Positions 26,308 to 48,853 of a stretch of DNA of 64,000 nucleotides are shown here, in pieces. This stretch comes from Lepidodermella squamata. Taxonomy: Eukaryota > Animalia > Gastrotricha. The translations under genes and the position numbers were made by a program. The stretch spans positions 1,674,001 to 1,738,000 of the forward strand of contig JBLDXI010000001.1 of the NCBI GenBank assembly GCA_047495785.1, written 5' to 3'. The notes beneath the pieces are model-generated. The model saw only the letters and a program-made list of their open reading frames with translations. It did not search any database and had not been told where the DNA came from. Position 1 is the stretch's first letter; each line of letters begins with the position of its first letter.

Positions 26308-26654
26308 ATCAAACATAGACTGTTTTTTTTATTATAAATTGCTTTTACAGCTTTAGATATATCATTGACAGTAAATCATTCGCAAAGATCGTATAACTAA
26401 GTGATTATAAGGATTTTTTGCTCGTGGCACAAGGGTGTTTATATGTACAAAAACAGAGTGTAAACATCGTGACATTCCCTAGACTGTTTGCTTACTTTGC
26501 AAACCACGCATGTAGGCGTTATAGTGTATATCAGCCTTAAATAAATTGTCTGCAATCTGAAATCGGAGACTTGGGCCTAAATCACACCTACCCGCCGGCA
26601 CGGATGAGTTAAAAGGCGAAAAATATCTGCGATATGCAAAAACAAAGATTAATC

Positions 26655-28750
26655 ATGGCCCTCTTGCCGTTTTTCGTTTTAGCTCTGCTACAAGTTGTAG
26701 CAGCTCAACAGAATTCTCCTGTTGTTAATACAAGATCAGGCCCGGTGAGAGGTAAAATCGTCACTGTGACCTCCAATCCGACCCAAATCGATGTCTACCA
26801 ATTTACTGGCATTCCATTTGCGAAACCTCCAACTGGTGATCTCAGACTGAGGAAAACTCAATCCGTCCAACCCTGGACAGCGATTCTCGATGCAACTAAC
26901 GATCCACCTCAATGCATGCAGAGTGCCATGCAAATTCCCGGTGGTCCTACTGTTGCACCAAAAATGTCCGAAGACTGTCTATACCTCAACATTTGGGCGC
27001 CTAAGGCCGCGGTCGATAGCGCTCTTAGTGGTCAAAATAGCCAAAAATTGAGCGTCTACGTATTCATCCACGGCGGAGCTTTTGTCATGGGTTCAATCAG
27101 CGATAAGACACTCAATGGGGTGTATCTATCAGGACTTACCAATGTCATTGTCGTAACAATCCAATACCGACTCGGATCATTAGGATTTGCCTATCAGGGT
27201 AACATCTACGCCCCGGGTAATATGGGGCTTTGGGACCAACTTGAGGCTCTGAAATGGATAAATGCTAACATCGGTTCATTCGGGGGTGACAATACAGCAG
27301 TAACAATTGGTGGCCAAAGCGCTGGCGGGTCTGCTGTTACCGCTCACTTGCTGTCACCCTACAGCAGGCCCTATTTCCAGCGAGCAATTATCGAATCAGG
27401 CGCGGCAACCATGGTATGGGGTAGGCGAAATTCCTCGATCGTCAGGCGAACTTCGGACATTGTTCTCAGCACGATTTGCATGCCTACTTCAAACATCGAA
27501 ACTTGGATGCAGTGCCTTAGCCGAGCAAATGCTTCGTCATTTCCAGCTACAGATTCGTCCCCGGCTGGTAAGCGAATCGTTAAGGAGGACAATTTCTCAC
27601 CTGTAGTCGATGGCGACTTCATTCCTCGAGATCCGTCGTCAATGCTGGCTTCAGGCAATTTTGCGAAAGTCCCGATTTTAATAGGAATGACTAAGGACGA
27701 AGCTTCCTTCCAACTGGTAATGCCTGATGGCAGTAACCCACCCCTTTTCGGTTTGCAGCCCAGCCAGTTGACAAATGCCCATTACAAAACGCTTATTTCT
27801 GAACGCTTCATCGATTTTCATCAACTACTGCATGACAGCAATAGTACAACTGCGAAGTTGAGGGTTACCTCGGCAATTGAATTTCAATATCAGCCGAAAA
27901 GTCAAGGTTTAGCGATTTTCCAAGCTGTTAGCGATGCTGATAGTGACTACACGTTCAAATGTCCTGTTTTGGCCTGGGCTACAGGTACGGCCAGTGCTAG
28001 GGCTCAGGTCTATGCCTACTTGTTCAGCCATGTAAAGGAAAGTCCTATGAGCTATCTCGGAGCAAAACACGGCGATGAACTTCAGTAAACTGCGAATTTT
28101 AAACAATTTTTAGGCTTATAATTCGATTTTTCAGATTCTTGTTTGGTCAGCCTTTAGCTGGATCCGACAATTCTTACTCCGACACTGAAAAGGTCCTCAG
28201 TGTAACTATGATGGCTTATTGGTCGAATTTTATAAAATACGGGTTAGTATTCAAGATATCTAGCCTCGAAATCGATTTAGCTTAGATTTTCAACAGAAAT
28301 CCTAACGGCATTGGACAGGGTCGTCTTCGTACTTGGCCATCCTATTCCGGCTCTGGTTGTTCGAAACAAGTTTTCGACATAAACATAGCCAGCGTAGTAA
28401 ACAAAACCAGCCCCGACTCGCAGGCCATTATTTGCGACTACAAGAGAAACGACTGTGAGATGGTATGAGTAGTAGTTGATGATCAGCTTTCAGCTATCAT
28501 CCCTCTTTTGTTGTGTTGTTGTTTTTTCATACATGTGAGGTTTGTTTATTAGTTTTGGAATGACTACATGCCGAAACTCGTCGCAGCAGCGTTGAACAAC
28601 CAGCAAACATCAATAACGACAACACAGGCCTACAATAACGATCGCTATAGACCAAGGCCGCCTCACGGGCGCCGACCTCCATACGGAAGAGGAGGCTATA
28701 ATAATAATAATGATGACTCATCGTCGCAGGACGGCGATAGGCGCGGCTGA
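26655..28750 (+). CDS. CCE8: secreted carboxylesterase, triplicate copy 1
   Basis: Signal peptide MALLPFFVLALLQVVAA; GQSAG, TKDEA, GAKHGDE; 4 exons; tail YNNDRYRPRPPHGRRPPYGRGGY...DRRG*. Confidence 0.93.
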
Positions 28751-28864
28751 AAAACAAAACATTTACTTTTCAAAGAAAACAAACTAAAAAACGTTTTCAA
28801 ACACACAATAAAAAGTAGTTGATGTATTACACTGCGTTGTTGTTCAAAATATTTGTTTTATATA

Positions 28865-29905
28865 CCGTAACGGGTCCTAACTTTGGACAAAACACCTTCT
28901 TTTTCAATTTAAAAAAATTCGGTTTTCGTCTAGAAAAATGGAAAAAAATAGCCAAACCTCCGCTCAAGGAATCTGCGTGGACAGGTGAAGTTTGGAAAAT
29001 TTAGAAGCTCACCTTGATTTTTAAAAAATAGGTAAAGAAACCTCTAAATTTGGACACTCGTTCCCAAATTTGGACACCTCATTTGCATATGCTAATTCGA
29101 CCTTACACACATTTTATTCCTTGTTGCGCAATTTTTCTCCTGTTTTTAAAGGCGAAATTTGTAGCACCGAGTCTCATTTAGAACGTAGACGGAGGGATAT
29201 CTGTTTGAGGTTAAACCATGGGTTGAGGTTTGAATGAGTCATGGAGTTTCTTTATCGCTGAACTATTGATATTTTTTACCGAAAGTGAACTGTCCATTTG
29301 TCCCATGGTACCTGCTGTTCACCTGTTTAATTAAAGATTGGGCGCCGTCGGATTTGTATTCGGATTCATTATTATTCTCTATGCTCTCTAGCCAAAATCA
29401 TGAAAGCATAGCCTAGGCCGGGAGTCATTAAGCTAATTCCAAGGTTTCATCAATGCGTTGCCATTCTTTTCAAAACTGACAAAAAGCATACATTTCATTT
29501 GCATATGCATAGAGATAAAAATATCATTAAAAGTGTCCAAATTTAGAGGCTAAATTCAAAGTCACCTGTATCAAAATTGGCTTGTCCTTCTGCCGAGATT
29601 TTTTTACAGAATTTAGTTTAGGTAAATCCCTATGCGCAAACAAAATTTCAGCCCTAACCGTTCACAGGTGAGCATTTGGCAAGGGGGGTCCCAAAACACC
29701 TTTCTGAGTGATCGAGCTTCGGCGATTTTTCGCAAATCGATAGTACATGAAAGTATTGGCAAATTTGGTACCGTTGGAAAGCCCATAAAGGGAGCTATTT
29801 TTCAGTGAACATTTTTAATTTTTATCAGTTATGTACAAATTGATATTTAGGTCTAAAGCTCAAAGTGTCCAAATTTGGGGTGTCCAAATTTAGAGCGCGT
29901 TACGG
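28865..29905. mobile_element. Non-autonomous Tc1/mariner-superfamily (Tc2/pogo-like) element
   Basis: Imperfect TIRs CCGTAACG-G--CTAA--TTGGACA, TA target duplication, and subterminal AAATTTGGACAC repeats. The empty site is visible after CCE10 (ttttatatagcggcgatcg, ~40615-40633). Confidence 0.85.
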
Positions 29906-30126
29906 TAGCGGCGATCGATAAAAACGGCGGGCTTATTGGGCTTGGAGATCAGGAAAAGGAAAACACATGGCTAAAAAGCTAAATTGACTCGATGACAAAA
30001 ATACTAGCTTCATTTTAAAAAAATCATAAATTGCTGTTATAGTTGTATTTAATCATTGGCATATAATTTAATGGCAAAACTCGCGAATAACTGAGTGATT
30101 ATTTGACATTTTTGGCATGTGACGTA

Positions 30127-31537
30127 CAGTTTGGTCTGAAAATAGTAAAGAACGCGCATTTCTTCAAATAATAGCGTTTTCAGCTAATGATCACGAGGCT
30201 AATCAATTTCTTCAATCTATTGATCAGCTTCCTCAATTCAATGGCGCACATCTGATTAGCCAATTTCGAGGGAAAAAAGAAAATCAGTCCTAATTCCGGA
30301 GAGAATTCACCGTGGTCGGAGGATTTGGGCTATCGAACCCATTGTTGCGTCATAAATTATGATAAATCAATAGCAAGAAACAAGCACTCCCCGAAAATCC
30401 AAATTTTCAAAGCCATTCTGACCAGGTCGAAAATAGTGAGAAAAATTTTAAATGACTTGTTAACACGTCATGAAAACGCGTTAACACGTCATAGCAACGG
30501 CAACTCGGGTAAATTTCTTCTGAAAAAGAGGTTCGGCTTTCAATCTAAGGCTAAATTTAAGACTTTCTGCCGACTCAGAATTTGATTTTACCCTCTTCTT
30601 GATTTTCTGGGATTTTCTGAAAGGTGCTCGAGTTAACACGTCATTGCGCCGGCGGCTAAGGGTTAAGAGAGGATATGCCATGTTAAAGAGAAGGATTCTG
30701 GTTGCACCTGCACGCTCAATGAAAGATGACCCAAAATATCAAAGACCTTTCCAATATGTAAATAGTTGGCTCCAATCCCAGACCTGTATAGGTGGAAAAG
30801 CCATATTTAGACTAACCCTCACAGAGTCATCGTTCGTTAAGCGCATGTCCCTACCGCCAATGTCGCCGAATTCACTAATATTTCAATAATAAAAACCATA
30901 TTTTCAGGTCAAGAGATTTTAACAGATAAAGTTTCCCAGGTTCTCAAACTGTAAATAACAAGTTCAACAATACCTTATAAAGGCTCTTTGAATTCGTCTT
31001 CTACCGAAGAATTCCAATTAATTTGAAGTTCAAACCTTTCGTAAATAAATTGTCATTTGCGTGGAATTAGCTCTTTTTTTCCTAGATTGGCATCTACACC
31101 TTCACTTCTACCGCAACTTGATCACTAACTAGGCCAGATAATTGAAGGCAGGAAAAGGCACATTGTTTTTTCTGTCACAAAAATAAGTCCTAATCATTGA
31201 ATTGAAACTTTTAATTTTTTCAAATTTTCTTTCGGGCTTGGACAATGACCCTTCTATTACTGCTTGTCTCCTTCACGGTAATGTAATAAGGTAATTCTAA
31301 ACCGCGTTAATTTATAGCTTCGATAAATTATGTTCTGAATTCTTTTTAATAAAGTCAATTTTCATTTGAAATTATTTTTTTCAAAATGAAGATGAAGAAT
31401 GCTGATAGAGAAAATTAACTTCAACTACTGCGTAGCTACAAGGTCATGTGCCCATCACATGATAACCATCATTCAACTTTTTTCAACTACGATTCGCGAA
31501 TCTTAAGTCGCAGCTTTACTAGTTTTAGACCACACTG
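30127..31537. mobile_element. Tc1-like non-autonomous element nested in the MITE left TIR
   Basis: 24-bp TIRs CAGT(T/G)TGGTCT(G/A)AAA(A/C)TAGTAAAG; TA duplicated at 30125-26 and 31538-39; no intact transposase ORF seen. Confidence 0.8.
30296..30662. mobile_element. piggyBac-like terminal fragment nested in the Tc1-like element
   Basis: Absent from the second copy (~36959-37000). Ends ...GCGGCTAAGGG|TTAA, the piggyBac-type TTAA-CCC terminus; internal TTAACACGTCAT x3; other end missing. Confidence 0.55.
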
Positions 31538-32079
31538 TAGATAGGACGCCGCACTCAGAGCACGCCGGCTGACCAAAAGACGTGTTCGCTTTTTTGCTCA
31601 TGAATTAGCTCGCAAAAATTAGTGTTTTGGCGCGATTTCCGAGACGCTACCAGGATGAGATGCATCTTTGAAGATGAATTCTGATGATGGATGGCAGCAT
31701 CTGCTCAAAATTTGATCAAAAGTCAACAGAAATAGCACGAAATAGGAAAATAATGACATGATTCATCTAATTACATTTGAAACGATGAACTTTGCTCCTT
31801 ATTAGTCTCACTTCAATTTTTCGTGCCCGAAAACCTCTTAGTGCGGCGTCCTATCTACGTCACATGATTTTTGGCACCTGACAGAAGGGTGGTAAATGCA
31901 CACGAACAGAGTGTAAAAATCGTGCTCTCTGTTCCCTAGACTGTTTGCTTGCTCTGCATGTAGGCGTTCTAGTATACTTATATCGGCCTGAACCTGAAAT
32001 TGGAGACATGGCCCTGGTGCCACCTACGTGCTGGCACGGAAATAAAAGGCGAAAAATATTGGGAAAACAAAGATTAATC

Positions 32080-34177
32080 ATGGCTGTGTTGCCATTTTTT
32101 GTTTTAGCTTTGCTACAAGTTGTAGCAGCTCAACAGAGCTCTCCTGTTGTTAATACAAGATCAGGCCCGGTGAGAGGTAAAATCGTTACTGTGGCCTCTA
32201 ATCCGAGCCAAATCGACGTCTACCAATTCACTGGCATTCCATTTGCGAAACCTCCAATCGGTGATCTCAGGCTGAGAAAAACGCAATCCGTCCAACCGTG
32301 GACAACGATTCTCGATGCAACTAACGATCCACCTCAATGCATGCAGAGTGCCATGCAAATTCCCGGTGGTCCTACTCTTGCGTCGAAAATGTCCGAAGAC
32401 TGCCTGTACCTCAACATTTGGGCGCCTAAGGCCGCGGTCGATAGCGCTCTTAGTGGTCAAAATAGCCAAAAATTGAGCGTCTACGTATTCATCCACGGCG
32501 GAGCTTTTGTCATGGGTTCAATCAGCGATAAAACACTCAATGGGGTCTATCTATCAGGACTTACCAATGTCATTGTCGTAACAATCCAATACCGACTCGG
32601 GTCATTAGGATTTGCCTATCAGGGTAACATCTACGCCCCGGGTAATATGGGGCTTTGGGACCAACTTGAGGCTCTGAAATGGATAAATGCTAACATCGGT
32701 TCATTCGGGGGTGACAATACGGCAGTAACAATTGGTGGCCAGAGCGCTGGCGGGTCTGCGGTTACAGCTCACTTGCTGTCACCCTACAGCCGGCCCTATT
32801 TCCAACGCGCGATTATCGAATCAGGCGCCGCAACCATGGTATGGGGTAGGCGAAATTCCTCGATCGTCAGGCGAACTTCGGACATTGTTCTCAGCACGAT
32901 TTGCATGCCTACTTCAAACATCGAAACTTGGATGCAATGCCTCAGCCGAGCAAATGCTTCCTCATTTCCAGCTACAGATTCGTCCCCGGCGGGTAAACGA
33001 ATCGTTAAGGAGGACAATTTCGCCCCAGTTGTCGATGGCGACTTCATTCCTCGAGATCCGTCGTCAATGCTGGCTTCAGGCAATTTTGCGAAAGTCCCGA
33101 TTTTAATAGGAATGACTAAGGACGAAGCTTCCTTTCAACTGGTAATGCCTGATGGCACTAATCCTCCCCTTTTCGGCCTGCAGCCCAGCCAGTTGACGAA
33201 TGCACATTACAAAACGTTAATCTCTAATCGATTCATCGATTTTCATCAGCTGCTATTTGACAGCAATAGTACAACTGCAAGGTTAAGGGTGACCTCGGCA
33301 ATTGAAGCTCAGTATCAGCCTAAAAGCCAGGGTTTAGCGATTTTCCAAGCTGTTAGCGATGCTGATAGCGACTACACGTTCAAATGTCCCGTTTTGGCCT
33401 GGGCTAAAGGTACGGCCAGTGCTAGGGCTCAGGTCTATGCCTACTTGTTCAGCCATGTAAAGGAAAGTCCTATGAGCTATCTTGGAGCAAAACACGGCGA
33501 TGAACTTCAGTAAACTGCGAATTTTAAACAATTTTTAGGCTTATAATTCGATTTTTCAGATTCTTGTTTGGTCAGCCTTTATCTGGATCCGACAATTCTT
33601 ACTCTGACACTGAAAAGGTCCTCAGTGTAACTATGATGGCTTATTGGTCGAATTTTATAAAATACGGGTTAGTATTCAAGATATCTAGCCTCGAAATCGA
33701 TTTAGCTTAGATTTTCAACAGAAATCCTAACGGCATTGGACAGGGTCGTCTTCGTAATTGGCCGTCCTATTCCGGCTCTGGTTGTTCGAAACAAGTTTTC
33801 GACATAACCATAGCCAGCGTAGTAAACAAAACCAGCCCCGACTCGCAGGCCATTATTTGCGACTACAAGAAAAACGACTGTGAGATGGTGGGTATATAGT
33901 AGTTGATGATCAGCTTTCAGCTATCATCCCTATTTTGTTGTGTTGTTGTTTTTTCATACATGTGAGGTTTGTTTATTAGTTTTGGAATGACTACATGCCG
34001 AAACTCGTCGCAGCAGCGTTGAACAACCAGCAAACATCAATAACGACAACACAGGCCTACAATAACGATCGCTATAGACCAAGGCCGCCTCACGGGCGCC
34101 GACCCCCATACGGAAGAGGAGGCTATAATAATAATAATGATGACTCATCGTCGCAGGACGGCGATAGGCGCGGCTGA
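32080..34177 (+). CDS. CCE9: secreted carboxylesterase, triplicate copy 2 (mosaic of CCE10-type 5' and CCE8-type 3')
   Basis: Near-identical to CCE8 and CCE10; triad intact. Real start is the ATG at 32080, not the upstream TTG of the ORF track. Confidence 0.93.
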
Positions 34178-34291
34178 AAAACAAAACATTTACTTTTCAA
34201 AGAAAACAAACTAAAAAACGTTTTCAAACACACAATAAAAAGTAGTTGATGTATTACACTGCGTTGTTGTTCAAAATATTTGTTTTATATA

Positions 34292-34997
34292 CCGTAACGG
34301 GTCCTAACTTTGGACAAAACACCTTTTTTAATTTAAAAAAATTCGGTTTCCGTCTAGAAAAATGGAAAAAAATAGCCAAACCTCCGCCCAAGGAATCTGC
34401 GTGGACAGGTGAAGTTTGGAAAATTTAGAAGCTCACCTTGATTTTTAAAAAATAGGTAAAGAAACCTCTAAATTTGGACACTCGTTCTCAAATTTGGACA
34501 CCTCATTTGCATATGCTAATTCGACCTTACACACATTTTATTCCTTGTTGCGCAATTTTTCTCCTGTTTTTAAAGGCGACATTTGTAGCCACTTGACACT
34601 AAAATATTGCTACCGATAGGATTCACTCATCGTCAGATTTAATGCAGATGTGCGCAATACCAATTATACACCAGGCACCAGGCTCTTAATACCGTTAATG
34701 AACCATGAATCTTCTCAAAACTATGATAAACCAGGTGAAGATGTCTCTAAAGCACCGAGTCTCATTTAGAACGTAGACGTAGGGATATCTGTTTGAGGTT
34801 AAACCATGGGTTGAGGTTTGAATGAGTCATGGAGTTTCTTTATCGCTGAACTATTGATATTTTCTACCGAAAGTGAACTGTCATTTGTCCCATGGTACCT
34901 GCTGTTCACCTGTTTAATTAAAGATTGGGCGCCGTCGGATTTGTATTCGGATTCATTATTAATCTCTATGCTCTCTAGCCAAAATCATGAAAGCATA
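34292..34997. mobile_element. Second, 3'-truncated copy of the Tc2/pogo-like element
   Basis: Same left TIR and insertion site as 28865; retains ~160 bp (34590-34750) missing from copy 1; truncated at ...aagcata. Confidence 0.85.
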
Positions 34998-35919
34998 TGA
35001 AGTGTTGGTTTATTAGGTAAATTAGAAAAACAATTCCTCAGCCCGCAGGCTAAATAGGAGATTACCGGGCTGTTAGTGGCCCCTCAGTGTTAGCAAATTG
35101 AATATACACAGCTACGGCTCCGCGTATTAAGCGAGGTCGACAGAATGACAAATAACTATAAATATACAGTGTTCATTATAATGTTAATACGGGAATACTT
35201 CCAAGCCAACGCCTCGGGCCGCCGCTTTGCGCGTGCCGCCACCCGAGGCCCAACCGCTGCCTGCATCGACGAAAATCTACAGATAGTCCATCAGCCACCA
35301 AAAGGAACCAACCACTCATCGCCTCGGGCCGCCGTTTGGTGCGTACCGCCACCCGAGGCCCAACTGCTACCAGGATCGACGATCCGCAAACTAAGAACAT
35401 GCCTTAAGGACCATGCCTCGGCATTACAATTCAATTTTAAAAAGTCTAAGATCTAGGACAAGAAAACAGAAAACATAGCCGGACTCGAACCGGGGCCTCT
35501 TGCGGCACATAACAAAATACGATTTAACCGGACCCGAACCGATTGCCTTTCACATACATAGAGATTTTGAAAAGATAATTTGAAAAGACCTAGGGGACTA
35601 GAGAAAGAAATAAGATAGAAGAGAGGAACTGAGAGGGAACCTACAGCGCACAGATAGCATCTATCCGCCACTAGTCAGGAACCGGAAAGGTCCGGCCGTG
35701 CAGGGAGCGATGCTCTCATCGCCACCCGCAACGAACCTGCCCTCCCCGCGACAAGCTGCGCTCGGGTCGTTGCTTCCGTGGACCGCCACCCGCCGCTGGC
35801 TTGCCGCCTCTAACACCCGACAACAGCCTAAACTGCTAGGATCGCTGGAAGTCGATCAAAGGACGATCGAACCGAAGGTAGAGGCCCAGCTCCCAATAGA
35901 TGGTCAAGAAAGAAACGCA
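34998..35919 (-). mobile_element. Putative solo LTR (922 bp)
   Basis: Begins TG, ends CA, flanked by CATA on both sides (34994-97 and 35920-23); AATAAA on the minus strand ~12 nt from the end; GC-richer than flanks. Confidence 0.5.
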
Positions 35920-36443
35920 CATAACTTATTTTTTTCCTGCCCCAATATGCATAACTCACGATTTTGACCTGAAAATAACTGGAAAGGGTAAATCGACAAC
36001 GTAGATCACGATTCTGATGTCAGAATGCAGTAGAAATGTACAGAAACCCCGTTTTTGACCAATCGCCCAAAACGGGACATTGGCAGTTGGCAGACTTGAT
36101 AGTGGCTTTTACACTGGCTTTTTTTTGTTGGTTTTTAACCGCTCTGTGAATAACGGGGTGGGTAATTACGTATTATAGACTCACTTAGCTACCCCTTTTG
36201 ACACCAGGCATAAAGAAATCGCGGTTAAAAACCAACAAAAAAAAGCCAGTGTAAAAGCCACTATCAAGTCTGCCAACTGCCAATGTCCCGTTTTGGGCGA
36301 TTGGTCAAAAACGGGGTTTCTGTACATTTCTACTGCATTCTGACATCAGAATCGTGATCTACGTTGTCGATTTACCCTTTCCAGTTATTTTCAGGTCAAA
36401 ATCGTGAGTTATGCATATTGGGGCAGGAAAAAAATAAGTTATG
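35920..36443. repeat. Inverted repeat, 223-bp arms with 78-bp spacer
   Basis: 35920-36142 is the reverse complement of 36221-36443; no mismatch seen by eye. Confidence 0.92.
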
Positions 36444-36781
36444 CATCAAAAGGGCACGGCCCCAATGGTGCATAATCGTGGCTCACTTCGGCTGATCAAC
36501 AATGGCTCATCGGCCATGTGTTGCATAACCGTGAGCTTTTGTGGGGTGATTAAGGGGACCCTAAGACACATCCCAGCGCAAACCGCTTCGAAAAAGACCC
36601 AACGGCTGATGAGAAACAAATTTTCAAAATTTTGACCCCTCATTTATGCATCATTAGGAGACTCTACCCTAGCTTCATTTAAAAAAAAATCATAAATTGC
36701 TGTTATAGTTGTATTTAATCATTGGCATATAATTTAATGGCAAAGCTCGCGAATAACTGAGTGATTATTTGACATTTTTGG

Positions 36782-38209
36782 CATGTGACGTACAGTTTGG
36801 TCTGAAAATAGTAAAGAACGCGCATTTCTTCAAATAATTGCGTTTTCAGATAATGATCACGAGGCTAATCAATTTCTTCAATCTATTGATCAGCTTCAAT
36901 TCAATGGCGCACATCTGATTAGCCAATTTCGAGGGAAAAAAGAAAATCAGTCCTAATTATTTAAAAATCATTAAAACAAAATTGTAATTTGAAATATGGA
37001 TTAAGAGAGGATATGCCATGTTAAAGAGAAGGATTCTGGTTGCACCTGCACGCTCAATGAAAGATGACCCAAAATATCAAAGACCTTTCCAATATGTATA
37101 TAGTTGGCTCCAATCCCAGACCTGTAGGTGGAAAAGCCATATTTAGACTAACCCTCACAGAGTCATCGTTCGTTAAGCGCATGTCCCTACCGCCAATGTC
37201 GCCGAATTCACTAATATTTCAATAATAAAAACCATATTTTCAGGTCAAGAGATTTTAACAGATAATGTTTCCCAGGTTCTCAAACTGTAAATAACAAGTT
37301 CAACAATACCTTATAAAGGCTCTTTGAATTCGTCTTCTACCGAAGAATTCCAATTAATTTGAAGTTCAAACCTTAAATAAATTGCCATTTGCGTGGAATT
37401 AGCTCTTTTTTTCCTAGATTGGCATCTACACCTTCACTTCTACCGCAACTTGATCACTAACTAGGCCAGATAATTGAAGGCAGGAAAAGGCACTTTGTTT
37501 TTTCTGTCACAAAAATAAGTCCTAACCATTGAATTGAAACTTTTAATTTTTTCAAATTTTCTTTGGGGCTTGGATAATGACCCTTCTCTTACTGCTTGTC
37601 TCCTTCACGGTAATGTAATAAGGTAAAACTCTAAACCGCGTTAATTTATAGCTTCGATAAATTATGTTCTGAATTCTTTTTAATAAAGTCAATTTTCAAT
37701 TAAAATCATTTTTTTTCAAAATGAAAAAAGCTGATAGAGAAAATTAACTCCAACTACTGCTACAAGCTACAAGGTCATGTGCCCATCACATGATAACCAT
37801 CATTCAACTTTTTTTCAACTACGATTCGCGAATCTTAAGTCGCAGCTTTACTAGTTTTAGACCACACTGTAGATAGGACGCCGCACTCAGAGCACGCCGG
37901 CTGACCAAAAGACGTGTTCGCTTTTTTGCTCATGAATTTTTTGCTTTTTTGCTCGCAAAAATTAGTGTTTTGGCGCGATTTCCGAGACGCTACCAGGATG
38001 AGATGCATCTTTGAAGATGAATTCTGATGATGGATGGCAGCATCTGCTCAAAATTTGATCAAAAGTCAACAGAAATAGCACGAAATAGGAAAATAATGAC
38101 ATGATTCATCTCATTACATTTGAAACGATGAACTTTGCTCCTTATTAGTCTCACTTCAATTTTTCGTGCCCGAAAACCTCTTAGTGCGGCGTCCTATCTA
38201 CGTCACATG
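36782..38209. mobile_element. Second copy of the 8-bp-TSD MITE with nested Tc1-like element (36793-37869)
   Basis: Same TIRs and TSD ATTTTTGG (36774-81, 38210-17); lacks the piggyBac-like fragment; copied with the gene duplication. Confidence 0.85.
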
Positions 38210-38422
38210 ATTTTTGGCACCTGACAGAAGGGTGGTAAATGCACACGAACAGAGTGTAAAAATCGTGCTCTCTGTTCCCTAGACTGTTTGCTTGCTCTGC
38301 ATGTAGGCGTTCTAGTATACTTATATCGGCCTGAACCTGAAATTGGAGACATGGCCCTGGTGCCACCTACGTGCTGGCACGGAAATAAAAGGCGAAAAAT
38401 ATTGGGAAAACAAAGATTAATC

Positions 38423-40482
38423 ATGGCTGTGTTGCCATTTTTTGTTTTAGCTTTGCTACAAGTTGTAGCAGCTCAACAGAGCTCTCCTGTTGTTAATACA
38501 AGATCAGGCCCGGTGAGAGGTAAAATCGTTACTGTGGCCTCTAATCCGAGCCAAATCGATGTCTACCAATTCACTGGCATTCCATTTGCGAAACCTCCAG
38601 TCGGTGATCTCAGGCTGAGAAAAACGCAATCCGTCCAACCGTGGACAACGATTCTCGATGCAACTAACGATCCACCCCAATGCATGCAGAGTGCCATGCA
38701 AATTCCCGGTGGTCCTACTCTTGCGTCGAAAATGTCCGAAGACTGCCTGTACCTCAACATTTGGGCGCCTAAGGCCGCGGTCGATAGCGCTCTTAGTGGT
38801 CAAAATAGCCAAAAATTGAGCGTTTACGTATTCATCCACGGCGGCGCTTTTGTCATGGGTTCAATCAGCGATAAGACACTCAATGGGGTGTATCTATCAG
38901 GACTTAGCAATGTCATAGTCGTAACAATCCAGTACCGACTCGGGTCATTAGGATTTGCCTATCAGGGTAACATCTACGCCCCGGGTAATATGGGGCTTTG
39001 GGACCAACTTGAGGCTTTAAAATGGATAAATGCTAACATCGGTTCATTCGGGGGTGACAATACGGCAGTAACAATTGGTGGCCAGAGCGCTGGCGGGTCT
39101 GCTGTTACCGCTCACTTGCTGTCACCCTACAGCAGGCCCTATTTCCAGCGAGCAATTATCGAATCAGGCGCCGCAACCATGGTATGGGGTAGGCGAAATT
39201 CCTCGATCGTCAGGCGAACTTCGGACATTGTTCTCAGCACGATTTGCATGCCTACTTCAAACATCGAAACCTGGATGCAATGCCTTAGCCGAGCTAATGC
39301 TTCGTCATTTCCAGCTGCAGATTCGTCCCCGGCTGGTAAACAAATCGTTAAGGAGGACAATTTCTCCCCTGTAGTCGATGGCGACTTCATTCCTCGAGAT
39401 CCGTCGTCAATGCTAGCTTCAGGCGACTTTTCGAAAGTCCCAATTTTGATAGGAATGACTAAGGACGAAGCTTCCTTCCAGCTGGTAATGCCTGATGGCA
39501 GTAATCCTCCCCTTTTCGGCCTGCAACCCAGTCAGTTGACAAATGCCCATTACAAAACGCTTATTTCTGAACGCTTCATCGATTTTCATCAACTACTGCA
39601 TGACAGCAATAGTACAACTGCGAAGTTGAGGGTTACCTCGGCAATTGAATTTCAATATCAGCCGAAAAGTCAAGGTTTAGCGATTTTCCAAGCAGTCAGT
39701 GATGCTGATAGTGACTACACGTTCAAATGTCCCGTTTTGGCTTGGGCTAAAGGTACGGCCAGTGCTAGGGCTCAGGTCTATGCCTTCATGTTCAGCCACG
39801 TGACGGAAAGTTCTATGAGCTATATTGGAGCGAAACACGGCGATGAACTTCAGTAAATTTCGATTTTCAATATTTTTCAAGCTAATAATTCGGTTTTTCA
39901 GATACATGTTTGGTGAGCCTTTGGCTGGATCCAACAACTCTTACTCCGCCACTGAAAAGGTCCTCAGTCTAACTATGATGGCTTACTGGTCGAATTTCAT
40001 AAAATATGGGTTAGTATTCAAGATCTAGCCTTGAAATCGATTGAACTTAGATTTTCACCAGAAATCCTAACGGCATTGGACAAAGCCGTCTTCGAACTTG
40101 GCCGTCCTATTCCGGCTCTGGTTGTTCGAAACAAGTTTTCGACATAACCATAGCCAGCGTAGTAAACAAAACCAGCCCCGACTCGCAGGCCATTATTTGC
40201 GACTACAAGAGAAACGACTGTGAGATGGTGAGTAGTATAGTTGATGATCAGCTTTCAGCTATCATCCCTCTTTTGTTGTGTTGTTGTTTTTTCATACGGG
40301 CGTTTGTTTATTAGTTTTGGAATGACTACATGCCGAAACTCGTCGCAGCAGCGTTGAACAACCAGCAAACATCAATAACGACAACACGCGCCTATAGACC
40401 AAGACCGCCTCACGGAAGAGGAGGCTATAATAATCGAAATAACGATGATGACTCGTCGCGGGACGGCGATAGGCGCGGCTGA
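38423..40482 (+). CDS. CCE10: secreted carboxylesterase, triplicate copy 3
   Basis: Triad intact; shorter tail TTRAYRPRPPHGRGGYNNRNNDDDSSRDGDRRG*. Confidence 0.93.
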
Positions 40483-43516: not shown

Positions 43517-46500
43517 ATGGCGCAGCCGGCTGCTTCGGCTACAACAGGTCAAGCGAATCAGAGTTCAACGGCCCAGAACGCCTCATCAAATGCTCGAGCT
43601 CACCAACTCCAACAAGTCTGTTCCAACTCACTACCGAAAAAATTATTCGGCACAGTTAAAAAGTTGATTTAAAATTAAAATAAAATTCGTAAAATTAAGT
43701 TTTCAAATACGAATTTAGATTTCTCTTGACAGCAACTATAAGCCATGACTCGAACACCTATTACGCCTGGCTGTGGATTGTTTCTTGCGCTGTTCTCTAC
43801 AACATCGTAGTTGTACCATTGCGAGCGTCTTTCATCGACGCAAATCTCGATAACATTCAGGGCTGGTTCGTAATCGACTACCTAATCGTCGATGTAATTT
43901 ACCTGATCGATATGATGATAAGAGCCCGCACCACCTTCTTCCACCAAGGCATAACCGTGACGGATACAAAGCTTCTACGACAACGATACATGAAAACATG
44001 GCAGTTCTGGCTCGATGTCTTGAGTCTTCTGCCGACGGATTTGATAATGATTGGCTTAACCCCAGTTTACATTATTGTTCGTATTAATCGGTTGCTCCGT
44101 GTCGGCCGGTTTTTCGAAATGATGACTCGGGTTGAAAGCAGCGCGGCTTATCCTAATGTTTTTCGATTGGCGACAACAGTTCTCGGTGTATTGATTGCCC
44201 TTCACTATACAGCGATTTTCTATCACTCGTACTCGAAAGCAGTCGGTTTCGGTCGGCCTTATGAAGATCCGGGTAGGGATGAGGATTTAGATGCAGACCA
44301 GTATCAAATGCCACTTTGGCGAGCAAGGAAGCCATTCTTTCAGCGGTAGTTCTAAAATTTTTCGATGAGATTCAATTTTTAATTTCTTTTTTATTCCATA
44401 GCTACACTTACAGTCTTTATTGGTCGACTATGCAGGTAACTACAAAGTCTAGTTTTATTTCAAATTTCCTGTTTTCGATAATAATTTAACAGAATTTATC
44501 TTTTAGCGGAACCTAATTTGCCTGTTGTGGAACCAAACTTATGAAAGGTGCCAATTTCGAAAAAAAATTTTTGATCAGGATTTTTTCGAGTTCTGAAAGT
44601 GAGGACAGAAAATGGCCCACAATTTTACCGTAATTTATTTGAATTATTTTAATGAAAAAAAATTATAAATTGGCTGGACGCTACCCCTAGCGGGTTAGCA
44701 ACCAGAGACGGGGGAACGTACGGTTGTTCCTAGGGATGCGGGTTGCGAGTAGGCGAATGAGTCCCACTAAATAATTGCGCTATATCTAAAGTTGCCGGCT
44801 ATAGAAGAGAGCACTTTAGGCTAATATGCAATATTTCATGAATTCTGGCACACACGTGCGACAACCTAACGCTACCTCATCACGGCCGGAACTACCGCGG
44901 CCTAATGAGCGACCGAGTTATAGCGACTAGAGCTATAAGTCAGGCGAAGTCCCGAGGATATTCCACACGGAAACTCTTTCTGCACCATATATTTAGTAGA
45001 TAGAGATGGCGAGACTACGGCCGAGGTACGTTACAGCGGATAAGGGCAAATCAAATGACTCATCGCAATTACTTACCTATATACCGTAAAAACCGAAATT
45101 GGGTCCTAGGTCTATAATAATGCCTTGCCTGGTTTAAGCCCCCAGTCTGAGCGATGATTGAACTAATAATACATCAGGCCTAAATTAGTGTCTTGGTTTC
45201 TTGGTCTTGCGTCTTGGTAAATATTTTGCACTTGTCACATGACTGAAATTACCAATTGCATTTCGGAGTTAGTTTTAGCAAAAATTCGATTAAATTAATG
45301 CGAAGCTCAAATCTGATCTGGCGAGTAAAAATGCCTGTTAGTTGAGATGAGTTTTCATCATTTCCCGTCAAGAACAACCCAAAACATGTCGAGTTTCATT
45401 TTTCTCATTTGTAACTTTTTCATCGCACACTCTCCTCTTCTGTGGAAAGCATTCCCGAAAGCGTCGAAGCTGAAACCTCGTCAAAGAAGAATGTGACTGG
45501 AAGAATTGAAAAAAATGAAAACGATCTCTACGAAGGGGAAATTTCACTGTTGTTTCATTTTTAAACTCTTTTTCAATTCAATTTCAATCTCATCTCATGA
45601 CGATAGATTCAAATAAATATTACCACAGTCTACAATTGTACCCCGCCTGTAATAAACCCTCACTTATTTCTTGGTTTGAAACTATAAAACCACGGCACCG
45701 GTTTTTACGGTAAGTTTCAAAACTCAACTGCAACACCTATATAATAAAATGTAATATTGCATGGATGCAATGACAGGCATTACAAGGAGATATTGCGATC
45801 TTGCACGTTTTTAAGTTGAAAGTTATTTTTTATTTCATCCTGAACATGAACGTAACGAAGTGAATAACCGCCTTTTCACTTTTCATTGTCCTTTCCTTTC
45901 CTTGCTACTATATACTTACATTTATTAAAGATGCTTGCCCATGACCACAATCAGGAACCGGTCCATATTTCGCGAAACAATGCTATCTCCAGCTAGTAAA
46001 TGCCGATATGGTCACTCAGGGTTATTCTAAGAGAATTCCAAGTCCCCGCTCACCTGACTGCTACGTTGCATTGTAAATCGACAAGTCCCGAGGACTTGAG
46101 AAAAATCTCTATCTCCATAAAATTAGATATCGCAGTCGGTCCAACTGCGAGTGAGTGCGATGACTCTCAGACTCTAAGCTTTAAGAGCTTTATGTGTGAG
46201 TACGATGACCCACGAGTGAGCACGATGACTCAATAAATCTACAGCTATTTGAGTAACTAAAATTCAGAAACTAAGTTTTCTACGGTTTTCGGTCCCTTAT
46301 ATAGACCGTCTAAGCTCCGCCCACTGGGTGAGGGCCGACTTTTATTGGCTAAGCAAATAAAATTATTGCTATAGGTGCAATAAAACTGCGCATTATTATA
46401 GTGCGCGAGGTCATGACCGTGAACGGTCAGAGCGTAGCGGTGGCCACCGCGCGGGGGTGGAGCTTACACGACCGAGAGGCCTATATAACGGGACCAAAAC

Positions 46501-48853
46501 CTCAGTTTATTTAGTTTCTGAATTTCAGTTACTCAAATAGCTGTAGATTTATTGAGTCATCGTGCTCACTCGTGGGTCATCGTACTCACACATAAAGCTC
46601 TTAAAGCTTAGAGTCTGAGAGTCATCGCACTCACTCGCAGTTGGACCGACTGCGATATCTAATTTTATAGAGATAGAGATTTTTCTCAAGTCCTCGGGAC
46701 TTGTCGATTATCCCACGCACTCCCAGTATAGCGGAAGCCCCGGACAGCCAGAATATTGAGTCCTCGGAAACTTAGAACATACGAGTCGCTATAATATTAT
46801 AACTCAGCCTCTGACTAGGGATCGGTAGTCGCGCCTTTTATATATTTTTACAAGGCGGACACAGGTTGTCGTAGAAAAACAGAAGTGAGTTGCCGCCGGT
46901 TGCACCTAGGCCCAGTCACATATGCAAATAAGATAACGCATAATAAATTAAAAATTCGAAGACTTAGAAGATTGACAATTTTACATCAAAAGTCTATAGA
47001 CTCGTGGCTACGGAGTAGTTTTCATCACCAAGTTGATGTTATATCATTCGCCAATTTAAAATTAATGCGGATCGAAAACATAATAGAAAACGAATAATAT
47101 ATTAGCTATGGCATTTTCAGCTGATTTCCGACTTGGGCATTGGCAAATTCATGAGAAGCTTAATTAGAAGACAAAAATTTAACTATCGCTAGGTAATAAA
47201 AGTGCGCGCAATAAAATTGCGCGAGTTAACGATGGAGCGCGACGTTGGCCACCGTGCGCAAAACGGGTGCGGACACCAGGACAAACAAAAAGTAAAACAC
47301 TAACGGTGGAACGCTTTACGTTCCCCCGTCATTCCAGAAAATTTAGAAAAGGCTGTTTTGCGGTTTTGGGAGAACTAATGAATTTAAATTTATTTCCCCT
47401 AAAATTAAGACCCGTAGTATCAATGCTGTTTAATTCAATTTTTTCAAGCTTTGCTTCATCGGAGAAATGCCTCATGGAAAGGCGCCGCATGAACGAATAA
47501 TTCAGGTAAATTTAATCCAAAATCCAATCTTTTCGAATCGATTCGCCTATTATTTTAATCTTTATTCATAGGCAACAATTTGGCTACTTGGTCTCATGGT
47601 ATGATTGATAGAAAATTACCCGTGGGAAAATTACCGAAAATATTATTCATAGATGTTCGGTGCTATCGTCGGTCGTATTGGATTGATTTTAAATAACGTT
47701 GGGGCTTCATCAAACCAATATCAGCTTCAAATCGACTCCATTCGAATCTACCTCAACCTACAAAAGGTTAATTTCAGGCCAAAAATAGGGAACAATTAAT
47801 AACTGCCTTACTTTTTAGGTGTCTCATGGCTTATACGAGAAAGTGATGCTTTGGTTCGGTTATGCGCACGAAAATCGAGTCCTAGGCGGGGAGGAGAAGG
47901 TTCTGAAGAAGTTGCCCGATAAAATGAAAGCTGAAATAGCTTCAGATCAACATTTAGCCGCGCTTAGGAAAGTCCAACTTTTCGCCGAATTGGATTCAAA
48001 TGTCCTCGTAGATCTCGTCACCTCATTCAAGCTGCAAGTCTTCTCACCAGGGGATTTCGTTTGCAAAAAAGGTCCCTATCGAATCATTCATCAAATCGTT
48101 TAAATTTGATTTTTTTATTGATAATAACAGGCGACATTGGTCGAGAAATGTATGTCGTTAAACGAGGCAATTTGGAAGTGGTCTCGGATGACTGCACTAA
48201 GGTTTTTGTAACCTTGAAAGCTGGATCAGTTTTTGGTGAAATTAGCCTCCTTAATATTCCAGGTTTCGACTAAAGGATTCTATTTTATTTAATTCGAATA
48301 ATCTTTTTTCATTTCAGGTAGTAAAACTGGAAATAGGCGAACAGCAAATGTTCGAAGCAAGGGTTACTCGGATTTATTTTCGCTGTCCAAGGACGATTTA
48401 TACACGTGTTTACAAGACTATCCAGACGCCATGCAGAAGCTGGTTGATAAGGGTCTCGAGATTCTGCGGAAGGAGAACAAAATCGACGAAGATGCGATTA
48501 TCATCAAACAACAAGCTGAGGAGGCGATGCGAAATCGCATGGCGGCCATTGAGCGCGGCATCGAAGAGGCGGAGACGCGTTTCGCTCGGCTGATTGCTGA
48601 CATTGGGGCTTCGCGCAAATCGGCATCTCGGCGGTTAGAGTTGCTCGAGCTGCGTATGGACATACCGCCGGTTGATCTGGCTCATGAGGATGGGCAGCCG
48701 ACCGAGGCGGGGGTTACAGCGCCTACGTCTATGTCTGTTACGCCGGCGTCGAAGGGCGTGTTGGTACGGGGCTTAGGGGCGATTCCGACTGTTCAGCTTT
48801 ACCCTGCCACGCCTACTCAACCAACTGTTGCAAGCCCTATCCAGGAGGAATAA
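43517..48853 (+). CDS. Cyclic nucleotide-gated cation channel, alpha (CNGA/TAX-4-like) subunit
   Basis: S1-S5 in exon ~43719-44346 (S4 [14 protein letters not shown]); pore helix [11 protein letters not shown] (44402-44435); filter exon 47449-47505; micro-exon 47572-47598; S6/C-linker from 47653; CNBD with GDIGREMY and FGEISLL...[10 protein letters not shown]; CLZ coiled coil [10 protein letters not shown]. Confidence 0.93.
45084..45710. mobile_element. Tc2/pogo-like MITE (627 bp) in the channel intron
   Basis: 12-bp TIRs CCGTAAAAACCG flanked by TA on both sides. Confidence 0.7.
46076..46709. repeat. Inverted repeat, 199-bp arms, around a 236-bp core
   Basis: 46076-46274 vs reverse complement of 46511-46709; two mismatches seen. 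Confidence 0.92.
46275..46510. promoter_or_regulatory. Putative bidirectional Pol II promoter
   Basis: Outward-facing TATATAA at 46303-46297 (-) and 46482-46488 (+), each starting exactly 29 nt before a TTAGTT Inr-like start. Each is preceded by GGG(C/T)GGAGCTTA GC-box-like sequence; CCAAT on - at ~46344-46348. Confidence 0.6.

Follow-up and report, generated by a model that had tools for sequence, protein, structure and literature searches.

An intronic TATA-containing palindrome of Lepidodermella squamata is probably an internal inverted duplication in a low-copy Helitron-like transposon

The window analyzed here, a 64,000-nucleotide stretch of contig JBLDXI010000001.1 from the gastrotrich Lepidodermella squamata, contains 634 bases of mirror-image sequence (46076-46709) within an intron of a cyclic-nucleotide-gated (CNG)-type channel gene. 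We consider it likely (probability about 0.8) that this palindrome is an internal inverted duplication in a low-copy, non-coding group-2 Helitron-like transposon (Helitron2/Helentron, HINE/DINE-1-like) lying antisense in the intron. Copy comparison identifies the segment from 47330 to 44670 as the mobile unit, not the palindrome, which is confined to the element. An earlier note on this DNA had proposed a paired non-coding RNA (ncRNA) gene or a novel non-autonomous element; the palindrome, as that note had argued, is not a classical MITE and does form part of a non-autonomous mobile element, but the 634-bp unit itself is neither an element nor a free-standing gene. The features of the locus are as follows.

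43726-44435, plus strand: channel exon 5' of the intron, with an Ion_trans match, ending ...YSLYWSTMQ/GT
44670-47330, minus strand: probable HINE-like element, non-autonomous and of Helitron-like group 2; its 2661 bp include the nested MITE
44680-44699, minus strand: 3' stem-loop GCTAACCC-GCTA-GGGGTAGC, 7 of 8 positions paired, 10 nt from the 3' end
44707-44720, minus strand: 3'-subterminal inverted repeat TACGTTCCCCCGTC, 14 nt, 37 nt from the 3' end
45084-45710, no strand assigned: nested MITE, 627 bp, 12-nt terminal inverted repeat (TIR) CCGTAAAAACCG, TA duplication at 45082-45083 and 45711-45712
46041-46467, minus strand: unit U, comprising an upstream region, TATA, a leader-like arm of ~200 nt and a splice-donor-like CAG/GTGAGC (46048-46056)
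46076-46307, minus strand: left arm, the original copy, contiguous with the core in directional unit U
46308-46477, minus strand: core, forming the upstream region of unit U; it holds an inverted GC-box-like pair and a CCAAT-like ATTGGC (46344-46349)
46478-46709, plus strand: right arm, inverted partial duplicate of TATA plus arm
47175-47258, minus strand: block in the 5' region of the element with weak, same-orientation similarity to the core's upstream half (66% across 99 columns)
47308-47324, minus strand: 5' hairpin GGAACG-TAAAG-CGTTCC; as in DINE-1, the 5' half of the hairpin lies within the subTIR
47317-47330, minus strand: 5'-terminal inverted repeat (subTIR) GACGGGGGAACGTA, 14 nt
47449-47505, plus strand: channel exon 3' of the intron, LCFIGEMP..., 19 residues, putative selectivity filter

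The host gene was assigned to the CNG-type channels from Ion_trans and cNMP_binding matches on different exons, each exon being scanned on its own. The Helitron-like element occupies 88% of the 3-kb intron (44436-47448) in antisense orientation, and the next exon begins 740 nt past the right arm, in agreement with the distance of ~740 nt given earlier for the filter exon.

On the minus strand the element runs from 47330 (5' end) to 44670 (3' end), and the full palindrome copies lie in elements of ~2 kb. Identical sharp ends with unrelated flanks were found in five clean copies (C1, C7a, C7b, C20 and C24) and in two variants, and the 3' stem-loop is retained, with loop changes, in all element copies. 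The junctions read T/GACGGGGGAACGTA...GTCCAGCCAA/T, with a T before the 5' end in all 5 copies compared and a T after the 3' end in all 7. Comparison of the copies revealed no target-site duplication (TSD) in the element flanks. A search for empty sites, made with flanking sequence from the copies in the window, C32a and C7a, recovered none, so that the apparent T-T insertion without duplication is read from the copy comparison. The 5' flank of C7a is a different repeat, whose own copies stop exactly at the junction. In C7 and C24 the host element lacks the nested MITE.

These ends have the organization described for HLE2, HINE and DINE-1 elements, which carry a pair of inverted repeats of 12-16 nt: the first is at or close to the 5' terminus, and the second, 20-60 nt short of the 3' end, is followed by a stem-loop (PMC11417382, PMC5148889, PMC4067079). 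HINE and DINE-1 elements insert between T and T without duplication, are non-coding and contain internal short repeats (PMC4067079, PMC11417382, PMC5148889), and in DINE-1 the 5' inverted repeat is nested in the 5' subTIR (PMC4067079). The window element shares this end architecture, including defined ends common to its copies, as well as the internal short repeats and the lack of coding capacity, and its junctions suggest T-T insertion. In contrast to DINE-1, which is present in thousands of copies, the family comprises ~8-10 copies. It also differs from HINE in bearing a 634-bp TATA-containing palindrome, a feature that was not found in the HINE descriptions consulted. Canonical Helitrons (HLE1) start with 5' TC, end with 3' CTRR preceded by a hairpin ~11 nt from the 3' end, and insert between A and T. 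The ends GACGG... and ...GCCAA and the T-T flanks of the window element do not fit this class.

No helicase coding remnants were detected in the element by tblastn, and the sole coding content of the long C20 copy is a nested non-LTR reverse-transcriptase fragment. The genome contains at least 41 Helitron_like_N matches, at least five of which adjoin the HLE2 marker DUF6570. Loci with DUF6570 and Helitron_like_N include C23:307092, C29:1971746, C9:371253 and C54:3273238. A search with the exact 14-nt end, which would miss a diverged partner, found no autonomous element with the same ends: 10 of the 11 matches are in known non-coding copies, the other lies at C32:4091033, and none of the 11 is near a Rep match. 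Terminal patterns of 27-30 nt occur just 7-8 times genome-wide, all in non-coding copies, and two additional element ends were located at C32:2875751 and C24:2973204. The element is presumably moved in trans by the RepHel transposase of a genome-resident autonomous group-2 element.

The palindrome was delimited by a repeat search as two inverted arms of 232 nt each (46076-46307 and 46478-46709), which are 94% complementary and separated by a 170-nt spacer. TATATAA boxes are located at 46482-46488 (plus strand) and 46297-46303 (minus strand) and the TTAGTTTCTGAATTT motifs start at 46511 (plus) and 46274 (minus), which places the start of each TATA box 29 nt from the predicted start on both sides. 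GC-box-like motifs are present at 46456-46463 (GGTGGAGC) and 46314-46321 (GGCGGAGC, minus strand), each arm holds three 19-nt repeats, and the hairpin halves TCGCAGT/ACTGCGA and CAAGTCC-TCG-GGACTTG were found in the palindrome. No outward open reading frame (ORF) of at least 35 aa starts from it. The TATA boxes with their spacing, the GC-box-like motifs, the repeats, the hairpin halves and the lack of an outward ORF had been listed in the earlier note and were confirmed in the sequence. As a single RNA the whole palindrome is predicted to fold into a ~200-bp duplex (-479 kcal/mol, z = -43). The statement in that note that the arms become identical right at the predicted start sites holds for the window copy, but in the C24, C7 and C20 copies near-identity reaches ~9 nt further inward (CAGAAAAC); an AAAAC>TTTAT change in the right arm is private to the window copy.

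What does not stand is the symmetry of the promoter. By sequence comparison, the core and the left arm are one directional unit, U, and the apparently symmetric promoter is this unit plus an inverted partial duplicate. A homologue of U (L052, 3471-3871; 67% identical) is single-armed and located upstream of an intact helicase ORF; it spans the core, the left TATA, the left arm and ~35 nt past the arm end, and this helicase-linked copy is at C1:4092621. The upstream core is 76% identical between the two, the arm 57% with many indels, and the hairpin halves are kept in this divergent arm. No U-like DNA was found upstream of the helicase paralogues. The TATA module looks promoter-like because its homologue occupies the promoter position before an intact ORF; to this extent the earlier promoter claim survives, and the left half may plausibly act as a promoter. 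U may represent a promoter, leader and splice-donor module, possibly still firing from the left side, which would have been captured from a gene or be intrinsic to the transposon family.

The duplication of TATA plus arm predates the last four copies. In C20 the right arm extends by a further 65 nt or more, in which the left flank seen in the window is copied in inverted orientation, and positions 46076 and 46709 are therefore duplication breakpoints, not termini. The TATA and arm of U were copied in inverted orientation, with the inner breakpoint beside GC-box-like motifs that already formed an inverted pair. L-type and R-type TATA-proximal sequences are each common to several copies, C20 has derived changes common to both arms, and the right arm of C7a is partly converted to the L type. 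These patterns indicate that arm-to-arm conversion keeps the arms alike.

A related case is HelibatN3, a bat Helitron that captured the promoter, first codons and splice donor of NUBPL and spreads this promoter-first exon-splice donor module, which can impose transcription from introns (PMC4778049). U resembles it in having a TATA box, a ~230-nt leader, CAG/GTGAGC and a homologue upstream of an intact ORF. However, HelibatN3 is a group 1 canonical Helitron with a proven donor gene and transcripts, whereas U is known from sequence alone, and the module in the window element is duplicated in inverted orientation. It is unlikely that U is an active mobile promoter/first-exon/splice-donor cassette of a group-2 Helitron-like element that was made bidirectional by the inverted duplication, launches antisense and sense transcripts into host genes (here the CNG channel) and was also recruited as a host helicase promoter.

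Three other explanations of the palindrome were weighed against a transposon-internal duplication. A dedicated symmetric divergent Pol II promoter driving two near-identical structured ncRNA genes of ~200 nt would account for the two TATATAA boxes 29 nt from the same TTAGTT motif, for the GC-box-like motifs, for the hairpin halves persisting even in the 57%-identical helicase-linked homologue and for the promoter position of the left-half homologue. Nevertheless, the unit was found solely as transposon cargo, single-armed copies exist, and the Rfam search suggested earlier, performed with the Rfam 15 covariance models over 44300-47600 on both strands, returned no match at E ≤ 1. Divergence between copies is a uniform 1-2% over the arms, core and adjoining transposon DNA, so that the arms are conserved no better than their surroundings. 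Variation among the copies is greatest in the inner 33 nt of the right arm and in the right TATA-to-start interval, which differs by 18-27%. Relative to the helicase-linked homologue, the core is better conserved than the supposedly transcribed arm. The arm copies are too similar for hairpin covariation, and the two divergent copies show conservation or mismatch and no compensation, with C32b carrying a mismatch in the hairpin stems. We regard a pair of ncRNA genes as quite improbable; with no sign of a dedicated RNA gene pair, the palindrome is therefore an ordinary kind of feature. The earlier note had stated that its proposal would fall if neither side were transcribed and the unit matched a transposon interior; the latter is what was found, every full copy being inside a Helitron-like element.

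A transposon origin would also allow the palindrome to act as a functional hairpin RNA (endo-siRNA) or editing substrate, either to regulate the channel or to silence the transposon family; the near-perfect ~200-bp duplex, if co-transcribed with the intron, and the conversion that keeps the arms alike would suit such a role. As in hairpin RNA (hpRNA) and proto-miRNA inverted-duplication loci, a long near-perfect hairpin would form on transcription through the repeat, but here the hairpin is predicted and its target would be the transposon family itself; the only candidate target outside the family is 57-76% identical. The same properties are expected of any young intronic inverted duplication, and we consider this function very unlikely. 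The least probable possibility, with only a slight chance of being correct, is an origin of the 634-bp unit as an independent foldback or MITE-type element, inserted in the Helitron-like element before the latter amplified. The unit has long inverted repeats at its ends, is non-coding and intronic like such elements, and arm fragments are dispersed at C11, C24b and C3. In MITE and foldback elements the TIRs form the extreme ends of a unit that inserted on its own and is flanked by a TSD. The palindrome has neither a TSD, as the earlier note had also observed, nor independent copies: there are four full copies in the 121-Mb genome, 4/4 within the larger dispersed element, and none of the 12 scored candidates is free-standing. 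Its arm ends are not termini, since the inverted homology of C20 passes them, and the helicase-linked homologue, consisting of the core and one arm, continues beyond the arm end. A true TA-flanked MITE (45084-45710) adjoins the palindrome.

Thus, the eye-catching symmetric promoter is explained as the cargo of a rolling-circle transposon, which removes the case for a new class of ncRNA genes, and a low-copy HINE-like family with exact ends is documented in an animal whose genome has many Helitron-like elements. The locus illustrates how two short inverted motifs can give rise to a long palindrome, which is then maintained by conversion. Real transcription from the unit is still conceivable, given the TATA, GC-box-like and CCAAT-like motifs, the exact 29-nt spacing on each side and a homologue that occupies a promoter position. 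In the channel pre-mRNA, a ~200-bp duplex could arise from the intronic palindrome as a side effect. Should the left module be transcribed, the channel gene could acquire antisense transcription or a long intronic duplex at a point that separates its pore-helix exon from its filter exon, an effect that the sequence alone does not indicate.

The 634-nt palindrome in the channel intron arose when one side of a directional unit was duplicated in inverted orientation; conversion has homogenised it, and it is carried as passive cargo by a larger HINE-like element. The host gene encodes a CNG-type channel on the plus strand, its domains being assigned by a scan in which each exon was analyzed on its own.

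43726-44346 (+): Ion_trans domain of the channel
44436-47448: channel intron
44670-47330 (-): larger element
45084-45710: nested MITE (627 bp, 12-nt TIR CCGTAAAAACCG, TA duplication)
46041-46467 (-): directional unit U (upstream core, left TATA, left arm, splice-donor-like end)
46048-46056 (-): splice-donor-like terminus of U, CAG/GTGAGC
46076-46307: left arm, 232 nt
46274 (-): beginning of TTAGTTTCTGAATTT, left side
46297-46303 (-): left TATATAA
46478-46709: right arm, 232 nt
46482-46488 (+): right TATATAA
46511 (+): beginning of TTAGTTTCTGAATTT, right side
47449-47505: channel exon 3' of the intron, encoding 19 residues
48061-48270 (+): cNMP_binding domain of the channel

A repeat search gave arms with 94% complementarity and 170-nt spacing, a genuine inverted repeat far above chance expectation. 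The following features described in the earlier note were located: the inverted arms, a start-to-start distance of 29 nt from TATATAA to TTAGTTTCTGAATTT on both sides, GC-box-like motifs, three 19-nt repeats per arm, both hairpins, and the next channel exon 740 nt beyond the right arm. When the 634 nt were folded as a single transcript, they formed a duplex of ~200 bp with an energy of -479 kcal/mol, versus -171 +/- 7 for shuffled sequences. These features had been interpreted as a symmetric divergent promoter with a paired ncRNA gene or a novel non-autonomous element.

Searching all 121 Mb of the assembly (12/12 candidates scored) revealed four full palindrome copies, on contigs C1 (the window), C24 (98% identity), C7 (97%) and C20 (90%), and the DNA flanking the palindrome is homologous in all of them. 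Comparison of the intron with other loci delineated a larger dispersed repeat with a constant start at window position 44669/70 and an end at ~47330, beyond which the DNA is unrelated from copy to copy. One copy of this element on C32 (C32a, 0.8 kb) has no palindrome at all, and others are single-armed (C7b, an inverted counterpart of C7b at the end of the contig, and C32b). The mobile unit is the larger element, not the palindrome. The right arm of the C20 copy is extended by at least 65 nt of sequence that matches the window's left flank in inverted orientation. Positions 46076 and 46709 thus mark breakpoints of a duplication or deletion, and this explains why a target-site duplication is absent. 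The left arm of the C20 copy is truncated by a nested reverse-transcriptase fragment of a non-LTR retrotransposon (C20:1180054-1182243; L045 7055-9244). Two single-armed copies (C7:4636945-4640069, L047, and C7:4653881-4655880, L008) lie face to face ~14 kb apart at the extreme end of contig C7, through a large inverted segmental duplication or an error of assembly.

The nested MITE is missing from the C7 and C24 copies and belongs to an abundant family (at least 25 matches on many contigs, 76-87% identity). Elsewhere in the window, ~15 carboxylesterase (COesterase-type) genes form a tandem array (~2600-62000) with recent duplications of 5.4-6.3-kb units at 26639-40300 (93-99% identity). Between these genes lies a second, unrelated palindrome (35920-36443; 223-nt arms, 100% complementary, 78-nt gap, CATAACTTATTTTTTTCCTGCCCC...), which has the appearance of a foldback or MITE-like element inserted very recently.

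On the window minus strand, the larger element reads 5'-T/GACGGGGGAACGTAAAGCGTTCC ... TACGTTCCCCCGTC-TCTGGTT-GCTAACCC-GCTA-GGGGTAGC-GTCCAGCCAA/T-3', where slashes mark its ends. Its 14-nt 5'-terminal repeat has its complement 37 nt from the 3' end, in a subterminal repeat that is followed by an imperfect 8-bp stem-loop 10 nt from that end, and the first half of a 5' hairpin is nested within the 5' repeat. Copy comparison revealed a T abutting the 5' end in 5/5 clean copies and the 3' end in 7/7, with no target duplication seen; a search for an empty insertion site recovered none. These features are those published for group-2 Helitron-like elements (Helitron2/Helentron) and their non-autonomous HINE/DINE-1 derivatives (PMC11417382, PMC5148889, PMC4067079), whereas canonical Helitrons have TC...CTRR ends and insert between A and T. 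The earlier proposal was correct as to a non-autonomous element, but not as to a novel type. The genome contains at least 41 Helitron_like_N matches, many within long open frames, and at least five adjoin DUF6570, the Pfam marker for group 2 (PMC11417382). A group-2 RepHel would move the element in trans by rolling-circle transposition. Among 11 exact genome matches to the 14-mer, none was in a RepHel locus, ten being in known non-coding copies (the exception is C32:4091033). The 5' flank of another copy, C7a (C7:2492274-2492624; L048 3275-3625), is a different repeat, whose copies on C73, C30, C29 and C54 stop exactly at the junction, so this element seems to have inserted end-to-end with it.

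The origin of the palindrome is indicated by C1:4092470-4092870, which aligns with the window minus strand from 46467 to 46041 (67% identity, 439 columns) over the entire core, left TATA, left arm and ~35 nt past the arm, and has no second arm. Core and left arm therefore form a single directional unit, U, and the right TATA and arm are an inverted partial duplicate. Its inner breakpoint adjoins a pre-existing motif pair, GC-box-like and inverted (TAAGCTCCNCCC / GGGNGGAGCTTA), that the single-armed homologue shares; we infer that fold-back or template switch at this short pair produced the duplicate. In the homologue, the counterpart of the splice-donor-like terminus is GTAAGG. A 424-aa ResIII/Helicase_C ORF, intact and intronless, follows the homologue ~190 nt downstream and is oriented alike. 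This helicase gene (C1:4093027-4094298; L052 4028-5302) has a DEAH box, and in the Atlas its closest clusters are chiefly bacterial or viral, with one eukaryotic. Its truncated paralogue without DEAH (C29:1977515-1978117; L054 1447-2103; 52% identity) lies ~4.4 kb upstream, on the same strand, of a DUF6570 + Helitron_like_N (group-2 RepHel) ORF (C29:1971746-1973116), and may be transposon cargo. Another repeat, 2.4 kb or longer, is present in three copies (C19:3278258, C26:285285, C19:13636; L055/L056/L057 1-2401; 99.8% identity, alignments all ending at one point) and contains a kinase-like fragment, a TBP-like ORF (215 aa) and a truncated ResIII-like ORF (203 aa). Fragments of U occur inside a serine-protease gene (C16) and on C11, C24b and C3, and ~85 nt of the element's 5' region are weakly core-like (66% over 99 columns, E ~1e-5 in a small comparison). 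U may come from a captured gene segment or may be native to the transposon family.

Between-copy divergence by region (C1, C24 and C7 copies)
Neighbouring transposon DNA (45711-46075): 1.4-1.9%
Left arm: 1.5-2.5%
Core: 1.2-1.8%
Right arm: 0.5-1%
33 nt from right TATA to its 'start': 18-27%

No part of the unit varies more than the right 33-nt interval, which contains a window-private change and a left-type conversion in C7. The TATA-proximal L-type and R-type sequences are common to several copies, so the duplication is older than their amplification. The two C20 arms have derived substitutions in common (98.5% identity to each other versus ~95-96% to other copies), which demonstrates arm-to-arm conversion; conversion tracts account for the abrupt start of arm identity with no need for selection on a transcript. 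Identity to the helicase-linked homologue is 76% in the upstream core and 77% from TATA to start, but 57% with many indels in the arm, a profile typical of a promoter region and not of a structured RNA. This profile argues against a structured paired ncRNA gene, and an Rfam scan of the palindrome-bearing intron gave zero matches. Selection on the arms is not indicated by these sequence comparisons. The proposed promoter is plausible as a promoter-like module, given the homologue upstream of an intact ORF, but it consists of one directional unit plus an inverted partial duplicate, and a mobile bidirectional promoter cassette appears improbable.

The inverted duplicate of U would leave an intronic duplex as a by-product, which could undergo editing or dicing. 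U itself may be a promoter/leader/splice-donor module, comparable to the one from NUBPL that HelibatN3 has spread and that drives chimeric transcripts (PMC4778049). Activity of the left side of U would yield transcripts antisense to the channel gene.
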